A stretch of 64,000 nucleotides of DNA from Blepharisma stoltei ATCC 30299 (Eukaryota > Protista > Ciliophora), in the NCBI GenBank assembly GCA_965603825.1, contig CBFDEM010000035.1, forward strand, positions 434,001 through 498,000, written 5' to 3'. Shown in pieces: positions 3,572 to 57,859 of the stretch (position 1 is its first letter; each line of letters opens with the position of its first letter). The notes beneath the pieces are model-generated. The model worked only from the letters and a program-made list of their open reading frames with translations. It was not told where the DNA came from and did no database searches. Position numbers and translations under genes: made by a program.

Positions 3572-6500
3572 TTATCTAAAAGGCTTATGAGGGATGATCT
3601 GTGTTATTGCTTTCATTTTTTCCAAATTCTTCTTTTCTCTACTAAAAAATGGTAAATAGCATCATAAATATAATGAAAAAGAGCTTAAAACGAAGCATGC
3701 CCATGAAACAATTATAAGCTCTAATTGAAATTTAATAACATTTTGTGAATCCTTATCAGCTAAGTCTATCAATAAATCATACTTATCGTCAAGCTCATTT
3801 AACTGCAGCATAATTTCAAGCCAAACATCAAGAAAATCACTCCTATGTGAGTAAACTAGATAAGAACCTTCAAATATCATTACATTCCCTGCTGATAAAA
3901 GTCCATAATCTAAGAAATTCTTAGAATCTGGTACTTTTTCATAGAATATGGTCATAAAATTGTGAGAAAGCAGAGGAGAGTATTTTTTATCTCTTATTTG
4001 TTTAACTGAATAAGTGGCCGATTGAAATGCTTCATTGAATTTTGCTTCTAAGTTTTTAAACGGATAAGTGTCTGCTAATAAAACGGTTAGAGACTGAGGA
4101 ACATTAACTACTGTCATTTCACTAGACCAAACTATCAAAGCTTTATAAGAGACTTGGGTATTTATAACATCTCTTAATAAGCTTGGCCTTAAATGCAGCA
4201 ATGAGGCACAATTTTTATACAAATACAAACTATTTAAAAAATAAAACAAAAGCGCAATAATCAAATAAACCCCAATTCTCCATATAAATTTTCAATAATT
4301 CTTAAAATTCGATTCCAAACTTCTTTTCCCATCATCAGAAACGCTATACATTTTCCCATGGACTTTTTCAAGCCTTTCTATGCAAGCATCTTTAAGTTCT
4401 GGATAGCTATTATAAGCATTTTTTTTAATTAAATTCCAAAATTTATTTTCCATATTGATAGCTGATATACAAAATGGGATTATTATAATCATACATATAA
4501 GGAGGACACCGAATCCTATACTTAATAAGGCATCCATTTGTAGCTTTAAAGAGTCAATATCTTCCATTTTGCATTCAATAAGGTTATAGAGCGAGCTGTT
4601 ACAGTATCTAAAAGATTCCCAGAAGCCATTTATACTAAAAAACTGCAGCTCTTTGATATTATCTTCATGATTAATTTGTTTTCTAATAAAACTGTTGCCT
4701 ATTTTTATGAACTCTGAAACAGTGTTTATAAGATTTGTATATTCAACATGGATTTCCCCAGTTGTACTTCATATTTTGTCAGCTTCATTTGTAAATATGC
4801 TCATAGAACACGATTTTCATTCTATTAATGTAGATACAATGGTTTCATAAAGGCTCTCTAATAGTTCTGCTTGTATATAATAATTTTCATAAGAAAATTC
4901 AATAATATTGCTTGGCCCATTAAGACTTTCAATTACAGAAATCCCTCTTGCATAATGAGTGACTGCATGGAAGACTTCTTGGAGCTTTCCCAATGTAATA
5001 TATACATCTATATTGCTTTCATGTGTAACTTTTGCTGATATATAAAATACAACAATTAAGTTTGTGATCATTACTGCTAACATCTAAATAAATTTTACTG
5101 ATAAAACTAGAGCTATATGGAAGATTTTTATTGTACGAGATGAGAGTTTTACTATATCATTTAGAATAGGAGACTGTGAAAGAGTGTCAGATTTTACTGA
5201 GCTTTTATCATTTTCGATATCTTTTCCGTTTATGATGTCTTCGTAAGTATTATCAATATGCTGCGTGTCAGTTTTAAAAGCAGTTTCTTTTATAGTTGAA
5301 TTTTGCCTTGAAAAAGGATTATTTTTTAGAGCTTTTTGATCAGAAATAGAGCTTTGGGTTATATGTATAGAATTTTGGCGTTTTTGCAATTTTCCCATAT
5401 TTAAAGGCTGGATTTCGTATGAATTTTTTTCTTTCCATGCTTGAATTTCTGAAGAATCATTTATAAGTAAAATATAGGGAATTTTTATATGATAAAATTG
5501 TAAAATACAATAAGTTAGATATGTATCAGATTTAAATGATGGAATTTGGTAAAGCTTTGAAGGCTGCATAGCCGTATAAAGCAAATTAGGAAATAATTGT
5601 GCAAAATAAAAATCTCTTAAATCTATTCGATTTTGGGCTGCAAGTTTTGAGAACTTTGAGAACTTTGCAGAATGTGCAGAAATTTGCCAGCTTTGTGATA
5701 GCAAAGCGTATTGTCTCTTGGCTGGCTTCGATCTGAAAATCAAAATAAATCATAATTTGTCAGAAAAGCAAGCTATTGACAGTTTTCCTGTGCATTCAAT
5801 AATAAAATCATCAGATAATGCTAAGAAAAAGCTTTCAGGTATATTTAAATCAGTATCATCTATAAGCTGCAATGAGGTGCAAATATGCTTATTAAAATAT
5901 TGATTATAAGGCCGCGGGATCAATTCAGAAAAATTCCTTCCTAGAATACTATCTATCGTGTATTTCAAAATTTCCAAAGATTTTGCGTTTGCAAAAATAA
6001 TATTTCCAAAAGTTTCTTTTTCAGCAGAAGCTAAAATCAGTCCATTATTTTCATCAAAATAGCTGAAATCTTTTAAGTCCTTTGTAGAGCTTGTTAAAAT
6101 TTTATCAATTGATCGAATTTTATACTCAAATACTGTTGCCTTATTAAGATCCCATAAAAGATTTCTTGCGAATGATGAATATAAAATTAATGGCTCTTTA
6201 CCTTTAGGATATGATAATGACAATTGTGAATACTCCCTTTCTAAATATATTAAAGATTCTGAGATATAAGTTATAAGCTTGCTAAGGCTACTTATATTTG
6301 GCTTTTCAGAAACGATTTCCTTCCAAAAATCGAGAAGTCTTATACATAAAATTTCGTCTTCTAGCTTAAAGTCATGAAATTTTTGAAAATAATCCAAATA
6401 TTCAGCACTGTCATTGGTATTAAATTCTGAAAGGATTTTCCTGCAAACGTATTCCTGATAGTTCCCTTCTCAGCTGAAATCTGAGTTTCTTATTTTGCTT

Positions 6501-7768
6501 AGCTTAATTTTAGCTAAAGAGTCATTATTTAATGTGAAAATGCAATAATTTGCTTCTCATATAACCAAAAGTTTATTTTTTAATAACTTGGATTCATTAT
6601 AGCATTTTCCCAGGAAATTAATGATTTTTTCTGTAAATTCTGTATTGTGTGAACAAAAATAATGTCTTAAGCAATGTTCTAAATAAAATAAATTGTCGAC
6701 TCTTTTGGGATTTGATGGAATATTTGAGCCAATTTTTTTTATTCGATATGCTAGTATTTTGACTGAAAATAGGCAGAATAGAGGGGTAACTGTAAATGTA
6801 AATAGAATTATTAAAGATGAACTGTCAAGGAGCTTTCCAAATAAAAATTGAGATGCTAGACAAGTAATTGCACACAACTTTATAGCATTCAAGCTGTTTA
6901 TAAAGAAATTAAAATATGGAAAATTCTTTAATGTTTCTATCAACAGCACAGCAGAAGCAATCATAAAGATTAACTGAAAATGCTCAATATAATTATCTGA
7001 AAGAACTGTATATAAAACTGGAAGGCTTAATTTAAATATTGCCTCATGAAACTCATTTTCTGAATGCGCTTTTGATACTAGTATATACTTAGCCATAGAA
7101 TGCCTTATTTCACCTGAAAATAATGCATCCATCAAAATAACCAAAAAACCCAAAAATAAGCTAAAAATTATCAAAATCTGTACCGCAAAATTTACTTTAA
7201 AATCCTCCATATTGCTTCCATCATAAATAGAAATTTTATCTTGACGTGAAAAATTAACTCTCAGACATAAAGCGAGGAGTGTTACTGACGGAATTATAAA
7301 ATAATTTGATAAAAAGTAAAAACTTTTCTTGTAAGTTTTATATAAAAATTCTGGAGTTTTCAATGATTTATAAATCAAGGCGATTGGGATCAGTAATAAA
7401 AGAGCATTTATCATAATGTTAATGAATGATATGTAGATGCAAAAATTAATAACACCTAAAGCATAGCATACGTTATCTAATCTAAAAAAGCCTAAAATGT
7501 GTCAAAATGTTTTGTTTGTGTTTCAGTCTGTTATTGAAAGGCTTGGAATTCATAATAGACTTGCTATTTGAAAGGACCAAATAATAGTTGTCAAAATTGT
7601 ATGGAGTTTTTGCTTGAAAAAAGATTTTTCATCAGGAATTTTCTGATAATATGCAGCTCAATAGAACTCAAAAATTGGCTTGATTAGTGATTTTTTGTTT
7701 TTAAGCTTTCTTGAGGGATTAGAGTCAAAGTGAATTTCTTCTGAATATCCCGAGGTATGATGTGTCAT
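3572..7768 (-). CDS. TmcB/TmcC-like PAS-domain multipass membrane protein, paralog 1 (~1393 aa)
   Basis: ATG at 7768, TAA at 3572-3574. All ORF fragments share one frame and are joined by TGA=Trp. One 15-nt intron, 5084-5098 GTAAAATTTATTTAG. PAS-like segment GNIIFANAKSLEILKYTIDSILGRNFSELIP. Confidence 0.85.
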
Positions 7769-8146
7769 TAATTATTTATTTGGAAAAATTAATTTTGAGA
7801 ATAAAGCTTAAAAAAGAAGTTCTGATTAGCTTGTCAGTATTTTATTATGAAAAATGATATATTAAAAAGAAACTGAAATCATAAATTTTTCTTAACAAAA
7901 TCTAAATAATATTTAAAAAATCTTATATACTTTTATATTTCTAACCATGCTTTATTTAGTGCTAATAGAAAATTAATGTTTAATTTTTAATGCTTAAATA
8001 TTTTCTTGAATTTTTTCTTTGCTTTAAAGAATTTTATAGGCAGTTTTTGAATTTGATTTTATATGCTCTTATAATTCACTAAATAAATAATAAATTAATT
8101 TAAAAATTTTATCTGATATAAACAATTGTTATTAAAATATTTTCGT

Positions 8147-11100
8147 TTAAACCCCTTGCGGTATTATTTTCATCATCGAGTTTATTTTCATCAAATATTT
8201 TTTTTCATTCCTGAAAAATATCAAATATTTTCCGAAATAAATTACTAAAGAAATCATGATAAAAAGTACAAGAATCGTCATTATCAAGTGTATTTGGTCA
8301 TCGATCACACTTTGAGAGTACTTATCGACTTCAACAATTATTTTGCTATAATATTGGTCAAGTTCAAAGATAAAACTCAAAAAACGTAGTCATGAGTAAA
8401 GGTCATAATAAAGATATATAAGAGCTCCAGAATCATATATTGTTATTTGTCCAGCTGAGTGTATTCCCGTTGCAAGCTCATTTCAAGCCGAGTTGACATT
8501 TTCATAATATATTCTATTGAATCCTTTTGATAAAATTTCAGAATACTTAAAATCCCTTAGAATAATTTCTGAATATTTTATTTTCGAAATTGCCTTTTGT
8601 ACAGCAGATTCACTATTTGTAAAAGGATATGCCATGTACAATTGATTTTTTATAGTACTATAGGTATATTCTCCTGAAATCTCAGTCACTCATATTCCTA
8701 GATTTGTGTATGACGTTTGAATAGTTAACAATTCTCTAATCACTTCAGGCCGATAAGACAAATAGTCGGCACATTTTTCATAAAAATACAATATATTGGT
8801 TAAAGAAAATAAAAATACAATTATGCAATAGATAAAAATCCTTCATGTATATTTTCAATAATTTTTGAAATTAAATGACTTTTTTGAGAGTTTTTTGTCG
8901 TTTGTTGCAATTTCAGCTTGATAATGAATATTTGTAAGCCTATCAATGCTTGAATTTGCAAGCTCAAAATAGTTCTTATATGCAGATTTTCTTACGTTGT
9001 TTCAAAGATCGTTTTCAATTTTTAAAGTTGAATAGCAAAATGGAGCCATAATTAGAATGCAAGTTCCCAAGACAGCAATCCCTAGCACTAATAATATAAA
9101 CATTTTGGATTTAAAATTATTGATTCCAGTTTCCTGGCAATCTATAACATCATACATTGAGTGATTGCAATAGTAAAAAGCTTCACCATATCCATTTATT
9201 ATCATAAATGCAGCTTCTTCGGTAAAATCTTCTGAAGTATTATACTTCCTTATAAATTCTTTTCCCTATATAGATTTTACAGTCTGAATAAACAGAGTTA
9301 AAGTATCCAATAAGTTTGTTTTTTCCCGATAAATACCATTATCCAAATACCACATGTCAATATTTTTATCGGTAACTATACTTCTGCCTGAGCATGAGTC
9401 CCAGCTTGTTAAATTATTAGCAATATAAGAATGAATATTTTCCAGTTCACCAATTTTCGTTTCTAATCCTGCAAAAATCGGAGGTAATATTGAGCTGGAA
9501 TAAATTGCATATGGCGACAATATTAAAACTACTTTTGCTATATAAGCAGCTAATTGTAAATTTTTGCCAGCTTCTCCAACAGTTAAAGGAAGGCTCATAT
9601 CGCTGACTAAATCGATGCTGGAAAATGCATAAAATAAAACTGCGATGTTTGTAGCAATTACAATTAAAACCTATATAAAATTTACAGAGAGGACAAAAAC
9701 AAAATGCAAAATATTTATAGACCTTGAAAATATTTTTATAATGCTTAAAAATTGTTTTAAGGAGGTGTGCAAAGAAATTTGGGATTTTTCATCAAGTTTG
9801 TCTGAAGATTTGTCATTAAGAATATCTGAATTTTCATCGGACTTATTTATAATTAGTCTGCACTCAGTATCAAAGTTAAGTTCTCTATTTTCTTGGGATT
9901 TTGGAGTCATTGGCTGGCTCATAGGAATTCCAAGATTTTCTAATAGCCTTGATTTTCTTTTATTATTAATATAAGAAGGGCTGATAGGGCAGGAACATTG
10001 TTCAAGTGCTTTATCTTGCCATTTTTGCATTTCTTCGGGGTCATTTATTAATAAAATATATGATATTTTGACATCGCAGACTTCAAAATACATAAACACC
10101 AAAATTTTATCTGATAAATGATAAGGAATGAATGGTTGAAATTGAAATTTTTCAAAATTAAATATTTTGAATAGATCAAAACCTATCAAATTTCTATCAG
10201 AATATTTAGCATATTTAGAAAAATCTTCAGTATGTCCTAAAATTTCTCCATCATCTGATATTAATGCAACTTGATGACTTGCAGGCTTTAGCTTAAAAAC
10301 AAGTACTGTAATAAGAAAATTATTAATTGCTGTCATTGATGCTTTTCCTGTGCACTCTATTAAAAAATGTGTGGGAAGGTCTATAAAAAATCCCTCCTCT
10401 AAGTCAATTTCTGAGGCAGAGCTAAAATGAGCATACCATTTCATTTTCTCTATGAATATTTTTCTATAATAAGGTATAACAAAATTAGATATGCTGTTAC
10501 CCACAAGTGACGTGAATTTTAAAGTTTCTGAAGCAGCAGAATTAGCAAATAGAATTTCTCCGAAATTTTCTTCTTCATTGGAAAATATCAAAATTCCATT
10601 TCCGTCATCAAAAAAGCTGAAATTTCTTATGTCATTAGTGGAATTTTGAGCAAGCCTATCAAAATATCTTAATTTATTGTCAAGCATAATCCCTTTTTCT
10701 ATATCAAAAAGAATATTTCTTGTATATGAAGCATAGAGGGCTAAAGATTCTCTGGAATTGGAAAATTTTGTAATTATTTGACTATATTCTCTGCTTAGGG
10801 ACAAAATATTTTTATCTATGAAATTCAGTTTTCTTATAAGCCTATTCAAAATTGGCGAATCTGAAGCCACCTCTTTTCAAAATTCTAGTAAGGTTTCGCA
10901 TAATTTTTTATCTTCTTTCTTAATTCAATTTAATTGCTGGAAATAGTTTAAAAATTTTGAACTTTCATTTGTATAGGAATCTTCAATATTTTTCTTACAC
11001 AAATATGCTTGATAATTTGCCAACAAACTCCAATCAGAAATTTTGCTGATTTTGCTTAATTTAGCTCTAGCTAAAGACTCGTCTTTTAGCGTGTGCAAGC

Positions 11101-12316
11101 AGTAATTTATTTCCCATATAACTTGTAATTTGGCTCTATTTGTAGTCTTTTCTATAAAAAATGCTTCAAAAATGTAAATGATTTGATCTTTATTTTCAGC
11201 ATCATTTTCACACAAAGCGTGTCTTAAAGCTTTTTCTAATTGATATTTTGAATTAATTCCTGTTAAATTATTTGGTAAATTGGTTCTTGTTCTTTGCTGA
11301 AGTTTTAAGATAAAATTAATAAAATATAATGATGATAAAGGTATCAGCACAATTGCAAATAAAATAATTGATAATGAATTGTCTACCCAGTATCCTAGCT
11401 GGAAAATAAAGGATATAGCAGCAATAATAAAAAACCTAAGGATCAATAGCGAATTGCAAAAAAAAGAAAAATAGGGAATATAATTTATAGATTCCCACAT
11501 CAAAAATAGTGAAAAAAGCATTATCATAAGTTGATAATAAATAATATGATTTTCTGCAATTATCGTATAAAAAATTGGTAAGAAATATATAAAAATTGCC
11601 ATATGATTATCAACTCTTGAGTGCGCTTTTGCTTTAATTGTTTGCTGAGCTGCAAAATGACGAATTTCACCTGTAAGTTCAGAGTAAAATAATATAAGAA
11701 AAAAAGAAATAGCCATTGCAAAAACGATCAGTATCTGCAAAGCAGTGTTAATTTCAAAGTCCTTGAAATGATTATTTGAGTTATATTCTAATACTTTTTC
11801 CTCAGGAGAAAAATTATATTTGAGGTAAATGGAAAATAAAGTCATCGAAGGAATAAAAAGCATAATAGCCCATAAATAGGAAAATTTTTTAAATAAAACA
11901 AAAATTTGTTGAGGTAAGTCAAATGATTTGTACAAAAAAAAAGCTATAACTAAATGGCCAAAACCTATACAGAAAACTGTCAAAAATGATAAGTATAGGC
12001 ATTCATTAATAATGCCTAGCTTAACACAGGTGGTATCAAATCTTAAATACCCCATGATCTCTCAAATAAAAATATTTCCACTCCAATTTTTAACTGGAAG
12101 GTTTGGAATCCATATTAAAGCTGCAACTTGCAAACACCAAATTGTTGCTTCAAGCACTGCTTTAACCTTTTGTTTCGAAAAAGATTTATTTTCGAGGTTC
12201 TTTTTTGAGTACAATTGTCGATAAGTCTCAAAAATCGCATCTAATCATAAATTTTCGTTTTCAGTTTCCCAAAACTTATTTTTCGTATTGCCAAATTCAA
12301 TTGCTGGCCCTGTCAT
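8147..12316 (-). CDS. TmcB/TmcC-like PAS-domain membrane protein, paralog 2 (~1379 aa)
   Basis: ATG 12316 (MTGPAIEFG), TAA 8147. Introns 9671-9685 and 9266-9280. PAS segment FGEILFANSAASETLKFTSLVGNSISNFVIP. Confidence 0.85.
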
Positions 12317-13129
12317 AATTAATGCTTTTATAAGGAAAAAGGAATGAGATAGAAAATTTCTAATATGAAGGCTTTAAAATTTATTGTGATTTTTATAATT
12401 ATGATAATCATTTTTTATAAATATTTTAAAAATATCTGAGTGTTTTGAGCTATAGTTTTACTAGGAAAAAAATATTTTTAATATACCTTATTTTGCGTGA
12501 ATGGAACAGCCAAGCCTTCTTTGCACAAATTCATATGATATTGATTTTTAAATTTAAAAAAGCAACTAATGCTTTAATATCATATATGCAAAAGACTTCA
12601 GGGATGTTTATTACAATTTATTAAATATGATTAAAAAAACTCAATGTAACTGCTAAAAGACTTCAGCTGATATTGACTGTTATGAGATTCAATCTAAAAA
12701 ATTTTTGCAAACTGAAGTTTTTAAGCCTAATTGCTAAAAAGTCTGCCTAAATTAAGCAATAATCAATTATTTTTGTTTGAGTATAGTTTATATAATTTTC
12801 TCTCATATTGGCTCTATAACTTAAGGCATAAAAGTTTTTATCTGTTTTATTGTTCAAATTATATAAAATTATCATAATTAGCAAAGGAAACGTTAGAAAA
12901 CTTAAATTGTTTCAATTTTTATATTTTTGCTGATAATAAAAATATAAAATGAAATTACTATTAAGTAAAAAAGAAAATGCTAGAAGAAAAAATGGCATGA
13001 TTATTAATATTAATAGTCTTGAATGTTTAATAATTTTATTTAATGCTTTTTGATTAAAAAATTATATAAATAATTTTTATTTGCATTTCTATAAATATAC
13101 GCTATTAAAACCAATAAATTCATAAAAAA

Positions 13130-16100
13130 TTATGGCATTATTTTCATAACTGAATTGATTTTTGTCAAATATTGTTTTTCCTTCCTGAAAAATCTTAGAT
13201 ACATACCAAAATACATTGTCAATGAAATCACAATAAAAACGATAAGAATTGCCATTATTAAATGAATTTGGCTATCAATAATACTTTTTGAATAACTGTT
13301 AACTTCGTCAATCATTTGGCTGTAATAATGATCAATACTGGTTGCCACGAATATAAATTTTGTTCATGCAGCATAATCACTAAGCTCATAAAAAATAGCT
13401 GTAGCTTCATACATTGTGATTTCCCCTGCTGAATACACTCCATAACCAAAATCAGCATAAGGATAATTATTTACATTTTCATAATATAATTGATTAAATT
13501 GTTTTGATAAAATAGGGGAATTTTTTGTATCTCTTAAAACTATTTCTGAATAATTAATTTTGTCAATTGCGATTTGCATTGCAGCTTTGCTATCAACAAA
13601 AGGATAGGCATAATATAAAATGTACTTAGCAGCAGTTCCTGTGTATTCCCCTGCCGCTTCTGATGTTCATATCGCTAAGCTTGTATATAATGTTTGCATA
13701 TTTATCAACTCTCTTATGACCTCAGGCCTATAAGACAAGTATTCTGCGCATTTTTTATAAAAATAGCTCATGTTAATGATGGAAAACGCAAACACAATTA
13801 TAAAATAAATAAAAATTCTCCATGCGTATTTTCGATAATTTTTGAAGTTAAATGCATTTTTAGAAAGCTTCTTGCCATTGAGTGGAATTTCAGTTTGATG
13901 ATGAATGATTGTAAGCCTTTCTGTAATTGTTTGTACAAGCTCAGAATAATGCGTATAAGCAGATTTTCTTATGCTATTTCAAAGATTATTTTCAATTTTC
14001 AGAGTTGAATAGCAAAATGGGGCCATAATAAGAACACATGCACCAAGGACAGCAATTCCTAATACTAGATAAATAAGCATTTTTGTCTTAAAATCTGATA
14101 TTCCTGATTGCTGGCATTCTATAATTTTATATAGAGAAATATTGCAATAATGAAAGGCATCTCCATAGCCATTCAAAAGCATAAATGAGGTTTCAGTTGT
14201 GATATCTTCTGAATCATTGAATTTTCTTATAAATTCATTTCCCTATATAACTTTTACAGTATGAATAAATTTAGTTAATGCGTCCAATAAATTTGTTTTT
14301 TCCCTATAAACGCTATATTTTACATTTCATAAGTCAATATTTTGATCAGTAAAATAATCTCGGCCTGAGCATGAGTCTCAATTTGTTAAATTTGAAGTAA
14401 CATACGAATGAATATTTTCCAATTCTATCAGCGTGTTTCCAAATCCTACCATAGTGCTCAAAGCGTATTGTCTCATATCAGCTCCGCCATAACAAAGCAC
14501 TAAAACACTTTTTGCAAGATAAGCAGCATACTGCAAGTTTTTACCAAGATTTCCAATAGTCAAAGAAATACTAATATCACTGACTAAGCTAATGCTGGAA
14601 AAGGCATAAAATAAGACTGCAATATTGGTTGCAATAACAATCAAGATCTATATGAAATTTACGGATAAAACAAAAATGAGGTGTAAAATATTTAGGGCCC
14701 TTGAAAATATTTTTGTAATATTTATAAATCTTTTTAAGGAAGTGTGCTGGGATAAAAGAGATTTTTCGTCCATTTTTTCTGAAGAGAGATTGCTACTGAT
14801 ATCTAAGTTATCATCAGCTTTATTGATAGTAAGCTTAAAATCGGAATCATAATTATTTTCCTTGCTTTCTTGTACAGCTGAAGCAGTTGGTAACTTCAAT
14901 GGAATCTCTAAATTTTCAATTGTCTTTTCTTTGATGTCGCTTAGGTTAGAATAATTATTATCGCTATAATTTTCATTTAATCCTTTATCTTTTCATTTTT
15001 CTATTTCTTCTAAGTCATCTGTTAGCAAAATATATGGTATTTTAATTTTATGAAACTCAAAATATGCCAATAAAAGTATAATATTTTTTTCGAGACCAGC
15101 TAAATTGTATGGCACAAATGGATTTAAATTAGCAATTTCTATATTGAGGATATTGCTTAAAGCAAATCCTGCTAAGTTGCTTTGATTATTTACAGAGAAT
15201 TTCGAAAAATCTTCAGAGTGGCATAAAATGTCTCAATTTTCTGATATTAATGCAATATAGCGCCTTGTCTGCTTAACTTTAAAAGCGATTGCTGTTATAA
15301 TACAATTATTAAATGCAGTGATTGATGCTTTTCCTGTGCATTCCAATATAAAATTTGTAGGGAGGTATATAAAAAATCCATCATCTAGATTAATCTCTGA
15401 ATTTGATCCAAAATGTGTAAACCATTGAGTTTCATCAATAAATATTTTTCTATAATAAGGAGGAATAAAATTAGATATGTTATTGCCAACAATCGAATTC
15501 GAAGGAGTTTTTAAAATTTTAGAGGCTGCTGGGTTACTAAAAAGAATTTCTCCAAAATTTTCTTCTTCATTTGAAAAAATTAGAACTCCATTTTTATCAT
15601 CAAAAAAACTAAGCTGCTTGGTATCTATTGTAGAGCTTTGGGCAATTCGATCAAAATATCTTAATTTATTATCAAGCATAATTGCTTTTTCAATATCATA
15701 CAAGATATTTCTTGTGTAAGATGCATAAAGTGCTAAAGATTCTCTAGAATTAGAGAATTTCGTTATTATCTGACTATACTCATTGTTAAGGAAAAGAATT
15801 CTATCGTCAATAGCTTTCAGCTTCGTTATTAGACTTTTTAAAATGGGCTTTTTTGATGTAACCTCTTTTCAAAATTTAAGTAAATTTTTACATAATTTTC
15901 TATCTTTTCTTTTAATCCAGTTTAATTGCTGAAAAAAACTTAAAAATGTTGAGCTTTCACTCATATAAGAATCTTCAATATTTTTTTGACACAAATAAGC
16001 TTGATAGCTTGCTTCTCAGTTTCAATCTAAAACTGTTTTAATTTTGCTCAACTTTACCCTGGCTAAAGACTCATCTTTTAATGAATATAAAAAATAATTT

Positions 16101-38249: not shown

Positions 38250-38849
38250 ATTGAAATTAATTAATTAATTAATTAAAACAACACAATATAATTAAAAACG
38301 AAAAGATCGAAATTAATTTATTCAATATTCACATTTTTATTTAGAGTCACAAAAAAATTATTATTATTTATTAGAAAGGCATCAATAAATGCAATTTTTA
38401 TAGGGCCATTTTATTGTTTAGATTAGAAATAGCTCATATAGTGTGTTTTTAAGGATCGGTTACCCCTTTTTCTGTTTCTTTTTAATCTTTTAATTATTAC
38501 TTAGTTGCAAATTATTGATAAAACTTAATAATTACTTAGAACTTATGATAATAAACTTATAAAACACTCCATATTGGAGCGAAAAAGTCATGAAATCCAT
38601 GCACTCTGGGTAAATGATCAGCCCCAGCTCAGAGGGGTTATGGTAGCATATTACGGGGTTGTCTGTTAGATCGGGCTCACACCTCCTGATCGAGGATGAC
38701 TGAGGAAGGAGAAAGTGAAAGAACTTTTTCCTCATGCAGCAATGCCGAACTCTTTTGAATAGCACTAACTTAAATAGCTAACTCATAATGGCGGCAAAAT
38801 ATATATGAATCTAATTCTAATTAATTAGCTAAAATATTCAAAAAAACTT

Positions 38850-42700: not shown

Positions 42701-43920
42701 TAGTTTGCGAGCCATATCACTTGAAGCTTATCTCTTCATAAAATATTTTCTGAAAAGAAAGTTTCAAAAATATAAATAATTTGGTCTTTATTTTCAGCCT
42801 TAAGAGAGCATAGTTCATATCTAAGGGATTTCTCTAAGTCATATTTATTTTTCATTTCAATTATGCTCATTGGGATACCTTTATTTATTCTTTTATGCAG
42901 CCTAATAGTATAAATAATAACCAAAATAATTATTATTGGTGACAAAAATATTGCAAATATTTTGATAATTAATATATTATCAAGTCATTCCCCTAAAATA
43001 AAAATAAAAGCTATCCAAGCTAAAATAAAAAACTTAATGAGTGCTATTGTGTTGCTATATAAGCAAAAATATGGTAGATACATTATTGATTCTAAAATCA
43101 ATAAAAATGAACTCAGCATTGCAAAAAACTGCAGATAGACAATGTAGTCTTCATCAAATATTGAGCCGAGGACTGGGAGTAAAAATGTTAAAATTCCTGC
43201 ATGGAAGTCGATTTTTGAATGAGCTTTTGCTGTAATAATATTTTTTGCTCAACTATGTCTTATTTCTCCAGAAAATTTTGAATTTAATATAATTATAATA
43301 AAGCACATCCCAATTGCTAATATACAGCACGCGTTTCAAGGAGCAGGGATTTCAAAATCAGCAGATCTAGTGATATTTTCATATTCATTAACTTCCATTT
43401 TGTGCGAAAAATTGTATTTTATAAAGATGGAAAGAAGCTGTATGGAAGGGATGCATATTAAAGTTTGCCATAAATAAATAAATTTCTCGAGTAAATAAAT
43501 TACTGTTTTTGGTATTTTTATTGCATAGCTAATTGCAAAAAATAAAGCTATAGTTATTGAAAAAATACTGAATATTCAAAAAATTGAAGTATATAAACAC
43601 GTATCAATAATTTCGAGAGCTGCACAAGCGTTGTCTAGTCTTAAGTATCCGATCATTTTTCATAATCCCAGGTCATTACTTCAATTTTTAATATTAAGAC
43701 TTTGCATTCACAGCAAGCTTGCCATTTGAAGACATCATATCGAGCATTCAACAGTGACTTGAACCTTCTGCTTTGACAATGAATTTCTAATTGATCCTTT
43801 AGAATGATTAAGCATTCAGAAAAGTTCAAAAATTGGCTTAAGAAATAATTGAATTTTCGAGGTTTGCTTAGAATTTTTACTAGCTTGAGGTCTGGTGCAA
43901 TCACTATAGATTCTAGTCAT
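39757..43920 (-). CDS. TmcB/TmcC-like PAS-domain membrane protein, paralog 8 (~1377 aa)
   Basis: ATG 43920 (MTRIYSDCTRP...IWCLQMASLLW...WKMIGYLRLDNAC, with TGA=W). Introns 41275-41289 and 40876-40890. Tandem TAA-TAG stop. Confidence 0.83.
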
Positions 43921-44275
43921 TATTTAAAAAAATATTTTTGTTGAATAAAATGATTATTATGTAAGGAAGATTCTTCCTTCATTTAAAATGGAGCAAAGCT
44001 AAAAGTATTTTTAAATAGCAGCATCTAAAAGAAAGGATAAACAAAACGAAGGTAATTTTAATTAAGTTAAGCGTTTATTTAATGAGCTATTAAAATTTTA
44101 AAAATTCGAAATAAAATAATTTTGCTAAAGCAAAGCTATCATAGCCCACAATAGAAATATGATTTTTAGGAAATAGAATCAAAAACTATATCTCTCGCAA
44201 TAAAGCTTTAATATTTTAGCTATTTAATATGCATTTACCATCTGATTAAGAAATATTTATATAATTTTTTAAAGC

Positions 44276-47200: not shown

Positions 47201-48421
47201 TATACAGTAATTCGCAGCTCATACAATCTGAAGTTTATCTCGATGCATTATTTTTTTCTTGAAAAATATTTCAAAAATACCAATGATTTCATCTTTATTT
47301 TCAACATCATTTGAACATAAAGCGCTCCTAAGATATTTTTCTAGATCAAATTTATTTTTAATATCGACAATGATTGGAGGGGTTCTTGTTTTTGATTTTT
47401 TCAAAATAAATTGAATTATACATAATATTGATATAGGCACCAAAAAAATTGCGAAAATTGTAATAAGTAAAGAATTATCTATTCAATATCCCAGGATAAA
47501 AAGAAATGATATTAAGGCCACTAAAAAGAATCTAATAATTTCTAGTGTATTAGAGTAGACTGAAAAATAAGGCGAAAATGTCAGTATTTCTCATATTAAT
47601 AATGTTGAAGCAGCTAAAATCGAAAATTGAAAATAAATAGTATAGTTATCAACTGATAGCGGATAAAGAATTGAAAAAATAAATGTAAAAATTGCTGCAT
47701 GTAATTCTACTCTTGAGTTAGATTTTGATTTTACAATATTTTTTGCAGCACAATGACGGATTTCGCCTGAAAATTCAGTTGAAAGAATTGCTATTAAAAA
47801 GCTTAGCATAATAGCAGAAATGCTCACCATTTGTCATGATGCTGTAATTTTAAAGTCAGATAAATTATCAGTATTTTCATATTCAAGCACGTGATCATGA
47901 TTAAGAAAATGGTATTTAGAAAATATGGATAATAACACTAAAGAAGGTATGTATAGCAGTGCTAGTCACAGATAAATAATTTTTTCAAAAATAGCAAATA
48001 TTATTTTTGGCACTTTAACTGAATAATAAAGCGATAGGATCAATAAAACAGCACTTGAAAAAATTGCGAAAATTCCAGCAATTAATATGTAAAAACATTT
48101 ATCAATAATTCCCAAAGCCGAGCAAGCATTATCTATCCTAAAATATCCAATAATTTTCCAGATAATCATATTATTACTTCAATCTTCAATCGAAAGATGA
48201 GGAAACCAGAGCAAAGCTATAATTTGGACGCATCAAAAAAGAACTTCAATCACCAACTTAATTTTTTGTTTCGTCAAAGAATCTTCTCCGAAAAACTTTT
48301 TATAATACATCAAGCTGTAGAACTTAAAAACAGATTTGATAATTGATTTCTTGGGTTTAAGCTCAATGTTGTTTTTCCTCAAAGTCGTTGGCTGATCAAT
48401 TTCACTATCTAGTTCAAACAT
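44276..48421 (-). CDS. TmcB/TmcC-like PAS-domain membrane protein, paralog 9 (~1371 aa)
   Basis: Co-frame fragments. Introns 45797-45811 and 45395-45409. TAG at 44276. Confidence 0.85.
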
Positions 48422-48867
48422 AATAATAATAATAACTTACACAAAAAAATTAAAAATATAATATGAGTCAACTTTCTTGGAGCGATATCGTTATGATTTA
48501 TTAGCTCTCTCAATAAAATATTTTATGAAAAATATTTGTTTAAAATAGCTAAGTATCAAAAATCTTTGTGATAGAACTTGATGTTTTGAAGATTGAGATA
48601 ATTGCTTAATTTGAGTAAATATCAGTTTTCTATTTATGGTTACCTTTTTAAATAAAAAACAAACATTCCACGCAGATTTCTTAAAATATAATAATTGAAA
48701 TATTAAAACTTATCAAATAGCTTCAATTTTAAGAGATAAATGAATAAAACTAAATAATTTTATGAAATTTTTATTTATTAAATTTTATTAATGAAATTAA
48801 TTTTATTAATAAAGCCCATCTTATTTAAAAATTTTAAATAGCAAAGGAATAAACACAACATTCTAAT

Positions 48868-51800
48868 TTAGTATTTAAAAAATCTATCAGGAATAATCCT
48901 TGACATCTCTCTCATCTTACTAAGATATTTTTTTTCTTTTATCAAAAAAGATAAAAATATTCGCAAGTAGATTATTACTGATAAAACACAAAAACATATT
49001 AATGCTGCTATAATAAAGTTTAACTGGCTCTCTATGAGATTCTGTGAGTCATGATCAGCCAGCTTAATTAAAACGTCATATTCTTCATTAAAAACACTTA
49101 ACTCTTTGGTTAGGCTATATCAGAAGTCTAGGAAGTTGGGATCATTACCATAGCCCAGATAATAAGCTTCAGAAGCTAAAACTTTTCCTGTTGCATAAAC
49201 TCCATAATTTGTGATAATATTTGAGGTTTGGCATTTTTCATAGAATAATTTATTAAATTCATCTGATAAGAGAGGTAAATATTTAGAATCTTTAATAGCT
49301 TTTTCTGATAAAGCTATAGAAGCTGAAGCATGATCAAGCTCATATCGAGGATCGCTAAAAGGATATGCTTTCGCTGTATTATTAGGTAAAGATACTGGAA
49401 ATCCTATTATAGAGATTTCACTTGATCATATTCATAGAGATTTATATAAGGCCTGACTATTTATTAAATCTCTCAGTAAATTTGGTCTCAAATGCAAATA
49501 TGTTAAGCAATCACTGTATAAATATAGGATATTCACTAAAAAGAAAGCCAAAGCTAATATCAAATATATACAAATTCTCCAGCTGAATTTCCGATAGTTC
49601 TTTAAATCGGAGTTTTTACTGATCTGATTCCCATCGCTGAACAATGTATCTACTTTGCCATGGGTGGTCATAAGTCTATCTAAGCATGCCTGCTTTAACT
49701 CTATGTAATTGATGTATGCATGCTCTTTTATTAAATTTCAAAATTTATTTTCCATATTAATAACAGCTAGAGCAAATGGAACAGTTAACCCGAGACAGAG
49801 AACTAGGGTTCCAAATCCAACTGCTAATAGGATATCCATTCGATATTTCAAATCATCTATGCCTTGTATTTCACAGTCTGTAAGGCTATATAAAGTATTA
49901 TTGCAGTAATGAAATACCTCATCTCCTCCATTTCTTACAAAATATTTTATTTCAGTTTCCAGGTTTTCATTTTTATTTACTTTCCTTATAAAATCATAAC
50001 CCTATATAAATACTACCTTACTAATAGTATATAAGACAGCATCTATTAAATTTGTCTTTGTCTTACTGATACTGCCATCATCATTATAAATACGCACTGC
50101 TTCATGCACAAAAGCATTTTCACCTAGACATTTATGGACTCCCAATAAATTTTCAGTTATATTTGTATGAATTTCTTGAAGTAGGATTAGCTGGGATTCA
50201 AAATTGTCTAGAGTATATTTAATTAATTCTTTTGAACCTCCAAGAAATGTTAATACATGTACAGACCTTGAAAAAAGTGCAATAGACTGCATAACTTTTT
50301 CAATATTTCCCAAGGTTATCTGCATATCAATATCACTTTCAGAAATAACTTTAGTTGAGGTGTATATCAAAACTATAGAATTTGTAGCCATAACAAACAG
50401 CATCTAAATAAAAATTACAGCAAAAACAAAAGAAATATGAAAAATTTTTATAGACCGTGAAGATAAATTTACAATTCTTTTCAAAGCAAAATGCTGGGAT
50501 GTATTATCTGATTTATTTGAATGTTTTTCTTCTTCAAAACTTTTCCCGCTATGTTCTTCTGCAACTTCAGTGCTGTCTACATTTCCTATATGTGTGTCCC
50601 ATGGTAATTCTTCAAGTTTTGTTTGTTTTCGTATTTTTTTTCTTTTTATTATATCACTGTTATCTGAGCTTAGCGACCGTATCAAATTTAATGAAATTTT
50701 ATTTTTTGAGGTAAATTTTATAATTTTTCCTGCCTGTTGAAATTCATCAAACTCCCCTCGTCGGCATGCTTCGATTTCTTCTGGGTCGTTTATAATCAAA
50801 ACATAATTGATATTTACACTATAAAACTCAGAATGGCAAAAAATTAAATAGGTTTCAATTTCCATATATGAAAGATGATATGGGAAAAAAGGCTTAATAT
50901 TTTCTTGCTGAAATGCAGGGAGCATGTCTTTTAGTTTATAGCCTCTTAAATTATTATTGGATTTTCCAACAAATTGTGGGAAATGCTCTGAGTGTGAATA
51001 AATTTCTCCCTCATCAGAAATCAAGGCGAACTGATGAGAACTATTTCGATTTTTAAATACCAATATAAATATTAAGTGTCCAGATATGCAAGAAAGAGAA
51101 GCCTTTCCTTTGCACTCAATAAGAGATTTGTTGGGTAATTGGAGGAAAAAGTGCTTTGGGAGTTTGATTTGTGAGTCTGATACATATTGAAGAGAAGAAT
51201 AAAAAATATCATCTGTATAGGTATTATACGGAGGAGGAATAAAAAACTGCAATTTGTTATCGATAATTCCATTGATTGGATATTTTAATATTTCTGAAGC
51301 TCTTTGATTAGCAAAAGTGATTTGGCCAAATCTTTTTTGCTCAGCTAAGCCTAGTAGAATTCCATTTCCTTCATCAAAAAAACTTAGACTTTTAGCGTCC
51401 TTTGAAGTACCACTTGCAAATTTATCGATTGATCGCATTTTGTGCTCTAGTATTGTAGATTTTTCAGTATCGCATAATATGTTTCTTGCAAATGAAGAGT
51501 AAAGGATTAGTACTTCTTTGCATTTAGGAAACATTAAATGTAGGTGCGAATATTCTTCATCTAAATACGATATAGAATCAGGTATTGATTTTAAAAGGTC
51601 ATCCAATATATTTAAATTTGGCTTTATTGAAACAATTTCTTTTCAAAAATCTAAGAGCTCCATACACAAAATTTCATCTTCTTTTTTCGCATCATGGATT
51701 TTTTGAAAATAATTTAAATATTCAATACTTTCATTTGTGTCGAACTCAGAAAGGACTTTTTTGCATAGATATTCTTGATAGTTTCCTTCTAAGCTGAAAT

Positions 51801-53093
51801 GAGAATTTTTTGATCTCTCAAGCTTTATTTTAGCTAATGCCTCGTCATTTAAGGTAAAAATGCAATAATTTGCTTCCCATATTGCTAAAAGTTTGTTTTC
51901 ATGTAATTTGCTACAATTATAGCATTTTCCTAAAAAATAGAGAATTTCTGCTTTAGCTTCGATGCTATTTGAGCAAAAAATCGGCCGTATTTTACTCTCA
52001 AGGACATATATATTTGCTAATCTCTTAGGATCAGAAGGCACATCGAAGTCTATTTCCTTTAATAAATTAATTAGAATCCTTGCAATTATAATGTTTAAAA
52101 GTGGAATTACAAGAAATAAAAATAAAGAGATAACAAAAGCGTTGTCTATAACATTCCCAAATAAAAAAGCAAATGATATCAAGCAGATAGTTGAAAATTT
52201 TAATAATTCCAAAAAATTCATAAAAAGATTAAAATAAGGCAAACTTCTTATAACATCTAAAGCCAAAACTCCAGAAATAATCATAAAAATAACTTGAAAG
52301 TACACAATATTATTTTCTGCGGTAATGAATAAATTATTGGTGCTAAAAATGAAAAAGTTGCAGAATTTATTTCTAAATTTGAATGTGCTTTTGATTTTAA
52401 TTTCATTTTTCACATAGAGTGCCTTATTTCGCTTGAGAAAACTACATTCATTATTATCATAATATAATAAATAATCAAAGTAAAAATTATTCAGATTTGT
52501 ATCTCAATGGGCACTTTTAAATCCTCTGCCGAATCTTTATCTTTATATTCTAAAGCTGCATTATCAGGGGAAAAATTATGTTTTAAACATACACAAAGTA
52601 GAGTGACTGTTGGGATTAGTAAATAATTTGACAAAATATAAAGGATTTTTTTTATTACACTGACAAAAATTTTTGGAAATTCTATAAGCTTGTGAATTAA
52701 AATCACAAATATAACAATTAAGATAGCAGTTAATCAAACTGTTGAGAGGGATATATAAATGCAAAAATTAATAATTCCTGTTGAGAAGCATGCATTATCC
52801 AGTCTTAAATACCCAAAAAATTCTCAGATTGTTTTATTATCATCCCATTTGCCAATTGGAAGATGAGGAATTCATAGTAAGCTTGAAATTTGAATGCATC
52901 AAATTGTAGTTAAAAAAATTTTGTGTATTTTTTGTGTGATTATTGAGATTTCTTCAGGTTCCTCTTGGTAATAAGCAAGTCGATAAAATTCGAATATAGA
53001 TTTGATTAAGCAGGATTCTTGCTTATAATTTTTAACAAATTCTAAGCCTATGTCATTTTCGTTTGCAAAGCTATTCAATGCAAAATTTGACAT
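48868..53093 (-). pseudogene. Paralog 10: full length but with a 1-nt deletion frameshift near 52322 (recent pseudogene or assembly error)
   Basis: Reads ...KAHSNLEINSATFSFLAPIIYSL, then only two bases (cc), then AENNIVYFQ in another frame. Introns 50404-50418 and 50002-50016. TAA at 48868. Confidence 0.7.
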
Positions 53094-53650
53094 AATTTAT
53101 AATATCATGACCATCAGATTTTAAATTTTCATGTTGTCTATTTGATTTAATTTAAAAAAATCGAATAGATAAGTTGCTAAATAAATAAGTCGATTTTTTT
53201 TATAAAACTATAGAGTGCTAAGATTTAATTTATTGCGAATTAATAGAATTTTAACTTAAACACAGAAAAATAAGTATTTATATATAAAAATTATTTATAT
53301 TAAATATAATTAACAGGGATAATTTGTGGCACTTGCATTATTTTCTCACAATATTTTTTTCGTTATTCAAAAATCATAAAAATAGCACCAAATAGATGAC
53401 AACTAATCCCACACAAAAACTAGAAAATGCATAAACTATTAACTGCAAACGATTTAATATTGATTATTTATTGTTTTTGACAGCATTAAATAATTCCCCT
53501 TTATCCTTGCTTTACACCAGTTAACAACTATTTATATATAATGAAATCAAGAGAAAATTAGCAAGCAATTTATAAAAATTGGTATAAAGATATTTTAAAA
53601 AGCCTTACATTCCACTATCACTATTTTTCACTAAAAAGAAAAATTTATAT

Positions 53651-56600
53651 TTACCGAATATATTTATTAGGAATTAACTTTGTAATTGATTGCATTCTTT
53701 CAAGATTCTTTTTTTCTCGACTAAAAAATGGTAAATAGCATCCTAAATATATTGCCAATGAGCTTGCCACAAATAACACTAGTGATGCAATAATTAAATC
53801 CAACTGAAAATTAATCTCATTTTTTGATTCAGTATCTACTAAATCAATTAGTAAATCAAGCTGATTATCAATATTATTTAATTCTATCATAAGATATTCC
53901 CATACAACCAGAAAATCATATCGATGCGAGTAGTCCATATAAGAGCCTTCAATTGCGAGTAGTTTTCCTGCGGAATAAGTCCCATACTCTAAGAAATTGC
54001 TTATATTTTCAGTTTTTTCATAGAATATTTTCATAAACTCATCATTGAGCAAAATTGAATATTTTTTATCCCTCAGTTTTTTTTCTGAGTAACTGAGATA
54101 TTTTCATACCTCATGAAACTTCGCCTCAGTAGTCATAAAAGGGTTAGAATTTGCCAATAAAGTAGTAAGGGACTGTGGAACGCCGACAACTGTCAGTTCA
54201 CTAGATCAAACCATTAAGTTTTTATATAAAACTTGCGTATTTATTAAATTTACTAATAAATTTGGTCTCAAATATAGTAACAGTGCGCAATGCTTATATA
54301 GATACAAACTGTTAAACAAAACAAATAGCAGTGCTATCAGCAAATAGACTGAAATCCTTCACACATATTTTCAGTAGTTTTTCAAGTTTGCTTCTTTACT
54401 CTTTTTTCCTTCATCAGACACATTATAATCTCTTTCATGTATATTTATAAGCCTATCTAAGCATGCCTGCTTCAGTTTTCCATAATTTATATAAGCATTC
54501 TTTTTTATTAAATTCCAAAAATTATTTTCCATTTTGATAGCTGACAAACAAAACGGTATAATGATAATAAAACAAAGGAGAAGGATCCCAAATCCTACAG
54601 ATAAAAGAATATTCATTTGCAACTCCAGGGTGTTTATTTCTTCGATTACACAGTCATTTAGTTCAAATAAAGTATCATTGCAATATCGAAATGCTTGCCA
54701 ATAGCCGTTTAAGCTGAAAAATCTCAATTCATCAGAGTTATCTTCTTTTTTAATTTGTTTTGCTATAAAATCATTGCCATTTTTTATAAAATCTGCTATT
54801 ATATTGATAAGATTTGTTTTTTCCAAATGAATTCCTCCAGTTGTGCTTCATATCACTGCTTTTTCATCAGTAAAAATAGTCATTGAGCATGATTTTCAAT
54901 TTAATAAAGTCGAAACTATATTCTGATATAATTCTTCCAAGTTTTTAGCTTGGGTATAATAATTTTCATAAGAAAAAGCTAATATTTCAGGTGGGCCATT
55001 TAAAGACTCAATAACTGAAACAGCTCTAGCATAAAATGTATATGCATGAAATACTTCTTGTAGTTTCCCTAGCGTGATAGGCACATCAATATTGCTTTCG
55101 CTTTTAACTTTTGATGATATATAAAAGACTACTATTAGATTTGTAACTATTGCTGTTACCATCTAAATAAAAATTACAGAAAGCACAAGCATTATATGAA
55201 AAATTTTTAATGCTCTGGTGGATAATTTTACAATATGATTTAGTGTATATGTTTGTGAAAGAGACTCAGATTTTACTGAAGATCTTAATGAGGATTTTTC
55301 ATTTTCTATTATCCCTCCGCTTAATAATACGTCAAAACTGCTATCAAAATGCGAAGTATCTGTTCTAAAAGCGGTTTCTTTGGAATGCAATTTTTGTGAA
55401 AAATTGAGTGTTTCTTCGCTTTGAAAATTTTTGCTGCCATTAACAGTTAAGTGCCGCTTTAAATGTAAAGCACTGTGGACTTTTTTTATGATACCAGGCT
55501 CTGGAGACTGGAAATCTCCAAAATGTCCATGTTTTCAAGATGAAATTTCATCGGGATCGTTAACAAGTATTATATATGGAATTTTTATATTGTAAAACTC
55601 TATGACACAATAAGCTAAATATGTTTCTATCGTAATTGATGGAACTGGATAAAGCTTTCAAGGCTGCAAATTTGTATCATGCAAATTAGGAAATAACTGA
55701 GAAATATTGTAATATTGTAAATTTTTCGATTTTTGGGCTGCAAATTTAGCGAATTTCTTAGAGTGTGCATAAATATCGCCATTGCTTGAGATAATTGCGA
55801 ATTGCCTCTTGGTGATTTTTTCACGAAAAATAAGTACGAACCACAGTTTGCTAGAAAAGCAAGCTATTGACATTTTTCCAGTACACTCTATAATATGATC
55901 ATCAGGCAAGGCAAAGAAAAAACTATCAGGCAGCTTCAAATTAGCATCATCTACAAGCTGCAGCAAGTTATAAAGACCTTTATTAAATAATTCACTATAT
56001 GGATAAGGTATTATAGAAGAAATATTATTCTCTATAATATCATCAATCGGGCATTTCAAAATTTCACAAGCTCTCCCATTCGCAAAACTTATTTTTCCAA
56101 AATTTTCTATTTCTGCTGAAGCTAAAATTATTCCACTATCGTCATCAAAATAATTAAAGCTTTTGCTATCTTTTGAGGAGCTTGTAGTAATTTTATCAAT
56201 AGATTTTATTTTGTACTCTAAAATCGCTGATTTTTCGTTATCATATAAAATATCTCTGGCGAAAGTAGAATAAAAAACAAGGGGCTCTTTGCATTTTGGG
56301 AAGAGAGAGCTTAAATGTGTGTACTCTTTGTCTAAGTTTTTAATAGACTCAGAAATCATCTTTGCATGCTTGTTCAGTATATTTATATTAGGATTGATAG
56401 AAACTAGCTCTTTTCAGAAGTCTAGAAGCTTGGTGCAGATAATTTCGTCTTCAAGCTTGGAGTCGTGAATTTTTTGAAAATAATCAAGATATTCAGCGCT
56501 TTCATTTGAGTGGAATTCAGATAGAGTTTTTTTGCATATATATTCTTGATAGTTTCCTTCTAAGCTAAATATTGAATCTGCAATTTTGCTAAACTTGATT

Positions 56601-57859
56601 TTAGCTAAAGCTTCATTATTTAATGTAAAAATGCAATAGTTTACTTCTCATATTACTAGCAGCTTGTTTTTGTGCAGCTTAGTGTTGTTATAGCATTTTC
56701 CCAAAGAGCTAAAAATTTTATCTTTAAATTCTATATTATCTGAACATAAAAATGGTCTTAAGCAATGTTCTGCATAAAATAGTCCTTCTATTCTTTGCAA
56801 ATCTGAAGGAATATCTGGCTTATTGTTTTTAACTCTATGTAACAAAAATTGAACAATAAATACGCAGAGAATAGGCATGACAGTTAAAGTAAACAAAGTT
56901 ATCAAAAAAGCTCTATCAATAATATTTCCGAAAAAAAATATTCCAGCAACGCACATGACTGCACAATATTTCACAGCAATTAGGCAATTCATGAAAATGC
57001 TAAAATAAGATAAGCTTTTCATCGCCTCTATTAATAAAAGTATAGAAGTAACCATCAAAGAAAATTGAAAATATTCTATATTATCTTTTGAAACTATTGA
57101 ATGGAAAATCGAAAAAATAATTTCAAATAATGCACAGTGAATGTCTATTTGTGAGTGTGCCTTTACTTTTAGGTCGAAATTTGCTATAGAATGCCTGATA
57201 TCACTTGTAAAGATAGAATCCGCTAAAAGGATTATGAAGCATAATATCAAGCTCAAAAATATGAATGCTTGGATAAATATACTTACTTCAAAGTCTTTCA
57301 CATAACTATTATCATAATAATCAGCGGCATTTTTCTGGCTTGAAAAATTTAATTTCAAGCAAAAAACAAGTAATGCTATAGATGGAATAGATAAAAAGTT
57401 TGTTAACAAATATAAGCTTTTTTTGCAAAAACTGATCCAAAGTTCTGGAAGTTTTATCGATTTATGAAATAATATAAGAATCGCAATAAAAGCAAAATTG
57501 AATAAAATAGTCGAAATTGAGGCATAAATACAAAAATTTATGACTCCTAAGGCAGAACATGTATTGTCTAGCCTTAAAAAACCGATAAAATGCCATATAC
57601 CCATACTTTTCTTTCAGCCTTCTATAGGAAGGTCAGGCAGCCATAGTAGACTTGAAATCTGAAGTCATCAAATTATAGTGGTAAAAACAGCTTCTATTTT
57701 CTGCTTTAAAAATGATTTTTCCCTAGGTATTTTCTGGTAGTATGCAATTTTGTAAAACTTAAAAAGCAATTTTAAAGGAGAATTCTTCTTCTTCTTTTTT
57801 GTAGTAAAGCTAAGATTTTCAGTTGCTTCTCCGAGATCAGTAAAAGCCAAATTTGACAT
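53651..57859 (-). CDS. TmcB/TmcC-like PAS-domain membrane protein, paralog 11 (~1397 aa)
   Basis: Co-frame fragments. Single intron 55163-55177. Closest to paralog 1. Confidence 0.85.

Follow-up and report, generated by a model that had tools for sequence, protein, structure and literature searches.

The window, i.e. the whole stretch of 64,000 nucleotides (nt) analysed here, stems from contig CBFDEM010000035.1 (positions 434,001 to 498,000) of the heterotrich ciliate Blepharisma stoltei ATCC 30299 and contains most of a tandem cluster of 16 genes for membrane proteins of the TmcB/TmcC family. It is AT-rich with 26-35% GC. When TGA was read as a sense codon, a regular series of open reading frames (ORFs) of 370-1015 codons appeared on the minus strand only, and the junctions between these ORFs coincided exactly with 15-base GTA...TAG elements. 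For the B. stoltei genome, UGA as tryptophan codon and introns of 15-16 bp have been described (PMC9942806). Re-translation with UGA as tryptophan after excision of the 15-nt introns, as proposed in an earlier note on this DNA, gave eleven co-oriented minus-strand paralogues between positions 3575 and 57877, named g01 to g11 in the order of their coordinates. The eleven proteins of about 1.4k amino acids (aa) and two relics counted in that note were thereby borne out by gene models and tblastn. Ten of the eleven paralogues are intact and open over 1363-1397 codons, while g10 is frameshifted. Pairwise identity among them ranges from 31 to 71%. Five models (g02, g04, g05, g09 and g11) agree with deposited B. 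stoltei proteins in every residue. The spliced full-length models were used for alignment and for the ratio of nonsynonymous to synonymous divergence (dN/dS, omega); homology searches were carried out with UGA-free exon pieces or with deposited B. stoltei proteins and not with the joined models. The genes and relics are as follows:

3575-7771, minus strand: g01 (TmcB family), 1393 aa; single 15-nt intron 5084-5098
8150-12373, minus strand: g02, 1379 aa; introns 9671-9685 and 9266-9280; identical to deposited P0166
13133-17359, minus strand: g03, 1387 aa; introns 14648-14662 and 14243-14257
18330-22520, minus strand: g04, 1383 aa; introns 19845-19859 (GTG start) and 19440-19454; identical to deposited P0167
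23628-27821, minus strand: g05, 1387 aa; introns 25167-25181 and 24765-24779; identical to P0165
28490-29045, minus strand: relic 1, fragment of the ninth transmembrane (TM) segment and loop 1 in the 1.65 kb separating g05 from g06; best E 2e-11
29474-33583, minus strand: g06, 1363 aa; one intron at 30998-31012
34074-38264, minus strand: g07, 1387 aa; intron 35217-35231; deposited P0001 is truncated at the intron
39211-39356, minus strand: relic 2, short piece of loop 1 in the 1.5 kb separating g07 from g08; best E 3e-10
39760-43923, minus strand: g08, 1377 aa; introns 41275-41289 and 40876-40890; deposited P0004 is truncated at the first intron
44279-48436, minus strand: g09, 1371 aa, representative for all models; introns 45797-45811 and 45395-45409; identical to P0003
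48871-53096, minus strand: g10, frameshifted, break near 52312-52325; introns 50404-50418 and 50002-50016
53654-57877, minus strand: g11, 1397 aa; single intron 55163-55177; identical to P0015

Both relics were obtained by tblastn of the masked intergenic DNA as first-loop fragments in the two widest gaps of the array. The single frame change of g10 lies outside a homopolymer run and leaves a 278-aa head and a 1212-aa body; g10 is a probable pseudogene. Low-depth short contigs, from four runs only guessed to be RNA, were present on g10 at 48970-51500 and nowhere else in 47300-53200. They do not cover the 5' end of g09 (47300-48436), and none spans an intron or the g10 frameshift. The g04 intron at 19845-19859 begins with GTG and not with the usual GTA. 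It holds an in-frame stop, so that the unspliced protein would end after 891 residues, and deposited P0167 is spliced at this site. In g07, a stop-free 15-mer GTAA...CAG occupies the place of the first intron of other copies (35619-35633, minus strand) and reads through as VTFNQ. Since it contains no in-frame stop, the frame is kept whether it is spliced or retained.

All parts of the proteins follow in one order, namely an N-terminal block of eight TM helices (8-TM), a helical TPR region, a PAS domain, a weak second PAS-like segment, a variable linker and four further TM helices with two large loops of approx. 165 aa. This is the order read earlier from the sequence, although the second PAS-like segment is weak. 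The motifs WCLQM..LLW.P, GYLRLDNxC, GEIRH..KAHS, WxSCxG and YCNxSL...C named along with it were all recovered in the alignment. AlphaFold2 (AF2) models are characterised below by their predicted local distance difference test (pLDDT) and predicted template-modelling score (pTM). In g09, the parts are located as follows:

47387-48277, minus strand: N-terminal 8-TM block, approx. aa 49-345; AF2 pLDDT 94, pTM 0.92
46772-47101, minus strand: TPR_TmcB repeats, aa 441-550; 51.6 bits for Pfam PF25474 (cutoff 27)
46376-46744, minus strand: PAS domain, approx. aa 560-682; family profile against the FixL PAS, E 6.7e-7
46097-46375, minus strand: second, degenerate PAS-like segment, approx. aa 683-775; hhalign against the first PAS, probability 61%, E 8e-5, 34 columns
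45233-45757, minus strand: loop 1 between TM9 and TM10, approx. aa 884-1053, spanning intron 2; modelled as four-helix bundle with β-hairpin; three conserved Cys
44408-44911, minus strand: loop 2 between TM11 and TM12, approx. aa 1161-1328; modelled as second four-helix bundle

The Pfam family TPR_TmcB (PF25474) reached 42.1 and 52.6 bits on the window pieces of g07 and g09, respectively, with a gathering cutoff of 27, and 34.5-67.8 bits on full deposited proteins including those of g09 (P0003) and g11 (P0015). On the g02 piece, which is cut by UGA, it reached just 17 bits. PF25474 proteins of Paramecium, a chytrid and metagenomic ciliates carry a PAS domain after the repeats as the window genes do, and relatives with PF25474 share the whole layout of eight TM helices, TPR, PAS and four TM helices with two big loops. 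The parts succeed one another in the same way in the TM maps of three such relatives (P0172, P0173 and P0174). For P0173, a protein of Paramecium octaurelia annotated as TmcB/TmcC, hhalign gave a probability of 94% for the N-terminal block and of 81% for the C-terminal module. On sequence grounds, the window proteins belong to the TmcB/TmcC family, as had been suspected from their layout, and the link to Dictyostelium runs via the Pfam model and UniRef naming. The name-giving TmcB/TmcC of Dictyostelium discoideum are 'tiny macrocysts' proteins, and we know of no molecular function of TmcB beyond a genetic link to cyclic AMP (cAMP) signalling in sexual development. Two papers describe a role of Dictyostelium tmcB in sexual development, within the cAMP signalling pathway (PMC8516963, PMC12750705). 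The chytrid protein P0172 (Nowakowskiella sp., 2266 aa) carries an annotated Ser/Thr kinase (residues 362-659) ahead of the same architecture. Such a kinase would fit a role in signalling; it may be a real fusion or the result of two merged gene models.

The C-terminal module of g09 (residues 845-1371) was modelled from 72 sequences with a pLDDT of 91 and a pTM of 0.83. In the model, all four TM segments are prolonged into the loops by very long helices. Whether the loops form four-helix bundles had been posed as a check of the receptor idea; in the models they do, and they resemble bacterial ligand-binding sensor domains. In a structure-only scan (VIA-align), the NIT domain of NasR (4akk) ranked first with Z 17.3 and a root-mean-square deviation of 4.3 Å over 274 residues across both loops. 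It was followed by a designed bundle (Z 12.3) and, at Z 7.5-10.5, by TorS (10.5), Adeh_2942, McpN, NarQ, NarX and ligand-binding domains of MCPs. Helical bundles reach Z values of approx. 13 by arrangement alone, and the 17.3 of NasR is above this level, but not by much. The models are good evidence that each loop would fold as a four-helix bundle and that the pair would pack like a double bundle of the NIT or TorS type. Side-by-side four-helix bundles are likewise found in NIT as well as in TorS (3i9w), NarX (3ezh), NarQ (5iji) and McpN (6gcv). In the bacterial sensors and in the Blepharisma model alike, the outer helices run into TM helices, with the bundles outside the cytosol. In NasR, in contrast, NIT is a soluble cytoplasmic domain, and it differs from the Blepharisma bundles, which are separate loops of one chain, each with its own TM pair. 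Identity in the structural alignment of NIT and the loops is 9% and no sequence similarity was detected between them. The profile of the C-terminal module against sequences of the Protein Data Bank (PDB) came back empty as well. The NIT-like match of the predicted structure gives no evidence of common descent. Unlike the bacterial sensors, the Blepharisma proteins belong to a eukaryote and have no histidine kinase, MCP or ANTAR output attached. A Tweety/prominin-like fold was rejected as relative, as TTYH2 was matched by Foldseek with E 0.16-0.24 and template-modelling scores (TM-scores) of 0.11-0.19 and was absent from the top 50 of the structure-only scan.

The content of lysine plus arginine is 21% in the N-terminal tail and 18% in the short loop between TM10 and TM11, compared to 7-9% in the large loops; the C-terminal tail contrasts with these, too. 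Of the ten intact copies, nine or more retain the three Cys of loop 1. Given the eight helices of the first block, this charge contrast and the loop-1 Cys, TPR and PAS would lie in the cytosol and both loops outside. Thus, the large loops are most likely extracytosolic, which agrees with their earlier description as putative ectodomains. The short TM10-TM11 loop contains the near-invariant residues W1087, R1108 and L1109 of g09. A complex prediction for the 8-TM block with the C-terminal module scored 0.00, a value that weighs neither for nor against packing of the two.

Five more copies lie upstream of the window (contig 35:398975-427629), separated by a gap of approx. 10 kb from its eleven genes; together they make up the local cluster of 16 genes over 93 kb. 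The 41.5-Mb assembly of 64 contigs was searched with a 685-aa piece of g07. At least 65 loci were scored, all with E <= 6e-56, out of 197 first-look candidates, and they concentrate on contigs 35, 4, 17 and 64, among others. Blepharisma thus differs with its at least 65 copies and tandem clusters from Dictyostelium, which has a few TmcB/TmcC genes. Against a library of 1.8 billion representatives, the search gave 357 matching clusters at E <= 0.001, and those that were looked up came from Blepharisma, Fabrea salina or metagenomic contigs. A word-based homologue search with a 30-sequence profile returned 17 proteins, mostly from Blepharisma; its scoring was limited to the 8,000 candidates with most words in common, and it is no gauge of phyletic range. 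No Dictyostelium sequence was among the returns of the library search or of the 8,000-candidate word search.

The array is a macronuclear tandem cluster that has already been annotated and briefly published. Its proteins are deposited as 'unnamed protein product' of Blepharisma stoltei and named 'TmcB/TmcC TPR repeats domain-containing protein' in UniRef. Orthogroups of transmembrane proteins that form large, contiguous clusters are reported in the supplement of the genome paper (Singh et al. 2023, PMC9942806). Two of these, OG0000018 and OG0000052, have an N-terminal domain with at least seven TM helices and a central PAS in some members; identity in their clusters is typically <40%, and eroding short copies or pseudogenes occur (PMC9942806, SI). 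This description fits the window array, with the match made by description and not by gene identifiers, so that the existence of the array is not new. The clusters of the genome paper come without family assignment, model of the C-terminal module or function. Apart from that supplement, literature searches on TmcB and on Blepharisma or ciliate PAS proteins yielded just two passing mentions of tmcB.

Among the ten intact genes, mean identity was 41% in the 8-TM block, 46% in TPR and 43% in PAS, followed by 39% in loop 1, 36% in loop 2 and 21% in the linker. Close pairs, including upstream copies of the cluster (u1-u3; u5 is a further one), were compared for nonsynonymous divergence (dN) of loops and core. 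The dN values were 0.27 in the loops versus 0.10 in the core for u2/u3, 0.31 versus 0.18 for g05/g07, 0.63 versus 0.35 for u1/u2 and 0.17 versus 0.15 for g03/g04; in three of these four pairs, loop dN was 1.7-2.7 times core dN. The expectation of a higher divergence in the loops than in the PAS domain holds only in part: the means point in this direction (39% and 36% versus 43%), and some close pairs show it clearly. dN/dS was approx. 0.1-0.4 in every domain and 0.2-0.4 in the loops, which indicates that the copies are maintained. The synonymous divergence (dS) of 0.4 to above 2 marks the array as old. FastTree separated two old sublineages, namely g01/g06/g10/g11/u5 and g02-g05/g07-g09/u1-u3. 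As these are interleaved along the chromosome, the array did not grow by simple duplication of neighbours. The birth-and-death turnover assumed before is reflected in two relics and one frameshifted copy. The same remains, together with the non-consensus GTG splice site in g04 and the eroding pseudogenes that the genome paper notes in such clusters (PMC9942806), could be taken as signs that segmental duplication left nothing but decaying, functionless duplicates. This is extremely improbable, as ten of the eleven copies have kept approx. 1,380 codons open over the synonymous divergence given above, purifying selection acts on every domain, and intron positions and conserved motifs are retained.

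A large, clustered and diversifying family in which the ectodomains are the fastest-evolving folded parts would also be expected if the proteins served surface recognition or membrane organisation, e.g. in conjugation contact or cortical patterning, with ectodomains that bind proteins of another cell or of the own coat. The TorS-type double bundle is a structural neighbour (Z 10.5), and TorS senses via a partner protein and not via a small molecule. The connection of Dictyostelium tmcB to sexual development would fit as well. Adhesion domains are absent, though, relatives with Tweety/prominin-type topology match weakly (TTYH2), and no expression signal in the low-depth contigs of putative RNA ties the array to mating. 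This function is considered very unlikely.

In the putative cytosolic unit, Pfam PAS_9 scored 17.5-21.7 bits on the window proteins, below its gathering cutoff of 27 bits. The relative P0172 reached the Pfam PAS cutoffs with 27.6 bits for PAS_9 and 27.2 bits for PAS. With a PAS profile of 68 sequences, FixL (1d06) was the best match among solved structures (E 6.7e-7), followed by PAS kinase, EcDOS, BMAL1, CLOCK and HIF-3a with E 0.002-0.04. Judged from these profiles, the PAS domain is real. The following stretch aligns with the start of the first PAS in hhalign; a second, degenerate PAS is plausible there but weak. The motif IPxPYxxxH ends with a His that aligns with the His of H-D-x-Y in FixL, which we take to be the proximal heme ligand. 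Of 96 aligned family sequences, 67 have it. In the family tree (MAFFT and FastTree), the sequences without it form one clade of 27 (support 1.0) plus two singletons, so that 67 of the 69 sequences outside the clade keep the His. The clade has F, I, L, T, V or Y at this position, contains no His-bearing sequence and includes every gene of the window and of the cluster. All eleven window genes carry F, I or T; in g09, it is Ile at approx. residue 622 (near 46556-46558, minus strand). Thus, the heme PAS domains of FixL and EcDOS are among the closest solved structures, but the window clade is devoid of the aligned His. Owing to this loss, its PAS is probably not a heme gas sensor, and if the ancestral PAS bound heme, the window branch would have lost that input.

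The N-terminal block of g09 (residues 40-350) was modelled from an alignment of 70 sequences with eight membrane-length helices and the pLDDT and pTM listed above. No convincing relative was found with Foldseek against the PDB, in the structure-only scan of 48,161 chains or in the ESM Atlas; the best values were Z 7.7 on generic helices and an Atlas TM-score of 0.49. The profile of the block against PDB sequences and Pfam (E up to 10) was empty or gave noise. As modelled, the 8-TM domain would represent a fold not seen among solved structures. The top Foldseek rows for both models (ZnT7, Umb1 and glutamate transporters) had TM-scores <0.25, none with E <= 0.001, and were rejected. The same applied to a 7-TM domain of the type of G-protein-coupled receptors, as the block models with eight TM helices, the respective Foldseek rows had E >3 and TM-scores <0.2, and none appeared in the structure-only top 50. 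The near-invariant residues Q66, W88, D97, P159, H223 and P329 of g09 are mostly located in loops.

With such a block, the protein could be a regulated channel or transporter ('transceptor'), in which the 8-TM domain moves ions or a solute and PAS/TPR and the ectodomains only tune it. The block is conserved like the cytosolic core (41% vs 43-46%, omega approx. 0.2) and models with very high confidence, and the protein has no enzymatic output domain. Atlas leads to the fungal/plant TRP-type family PF06011 (feature score 0.81; shape TM-score 0.49 over 192 residues) hint in the same direction, yet they are weak and stay under the levels taken as meaningful. No channel or transporter of the PDB was matched beyond the generic helices at Z 7.7, no transporter family of Pfam was matched, and the near-invariant residues, by their position in loops, do not line an obvious pore. 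A transceptor is therefore possible, but somewhat unlikely.

The best explanation for the cluster is a TmcB-family membrane sensor with a double four-helix ectodomain and a PAS/TPR unit inside the cell, to which we assign a probability of roughly 0.5. In this sensor, a basic N-terminal tail in the cytosol would be followed by the 8-TM domain. The cytosolic unit would consist of TPR_TmcB, PAS and the degenerate PAS, and four further TM helices would extend into two extracytosolic four-helix bundles like those of a NIT, TorS or NarX-type sensor. A ligand may bind to the double four-helix ectodomain, and the uninterrupted helices TM9-TM12 could carry the signal, similar to bacterial receptors with four-helix bundles. 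Inside the cell, the PAS/TPR unit together with the conserved TM10-TM11 loop might read it. Pfam scans found no enzymatic output domain anywhere in the protein, so that the output would be given by partners recruited through TPR or by the state of the 8-TM domain as channel or carrier.

Several results weigh against this sensor model. Both structures are predictions, and the fold match concerns helical bundles, where a high Z comes easily. Searched against Pfam with E up to 10, the 72 C-terminal modules gave no NIT or 4HB_MCP-type family, and Foldseek of the module against the PDB gave nothing at E <= 0.001. Positive selection was not seen in the loops, where the top 40-codon window had an omega of 0.84 in the closest pair. 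In addition, dS is also raised in the loops (u2/u3: 0.83 vs 0.39-0.49), which would be explained by unequal age of the segments or by gene conversion of the 5' two-thirds as well as by diversifying selection, and suggests a mosaic history rather than such selection. Variable ectodomains on a conserved core, as claimed before, are thus a modest effect with omega values of 0.2-0.4 and no window above 1. There is no catalytic output domain, which makes the link from sensing to signal a conjecture. Overall, the receptor reading is structurally plausible but unproven. Compared to the earlier note, the sensory interpretation has gained structural plausibility, but the loops have diversified only modestly and the repertoire is not new.

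Ciliates show a rich chemical and mating behaviour, and to our knowledge hardly any of their surface receptors have been identified; we know of no identified receptor for either of the two gamones of Blepharisma. Approximately 200 clustered genes under purifying selection, with a modelled ectodomain similar to bacterial sensors, are a candidate receptor pool. The TmcB/TmcC family is spread across eukaryotes and is known only from the sexual-development phenotype of Dictyostelium, and the receptor reading, if true, would be the first mechanistic handle on it. A bolder and rather unlikely extension is that the proteins represent a eukaryotic receptor class in which a single chain combines a NIT-like double-bundle ectodomain of bacterial style with intracellular PAS/TPR and an 8-TM domain of new fold. 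The Blepharisma expansion of approx. 200 genes would then be a chemosensory repertoire, possibly with gamone receptors in it, and the window clade would have swapped an ancestral heme-PAS input (gas or redox) for extracellular ligands. New in this analysis are the loss of the FixL-aligned His in a single clade, the per-domain rates for the cluster and the interleaving of its two sublineages.

Past the end of the array (57877), the DNA at 58633-62999 (plus strand) and 63057-63743 (minus strand) holds a plus-strand gene with four FF domains (PRP40-like), an unassigned ORF of 893 codons and, on the minus strand, a ribosomal L7/L12-type gene, which is interrupted by a 15-nt intron (63646-63660).

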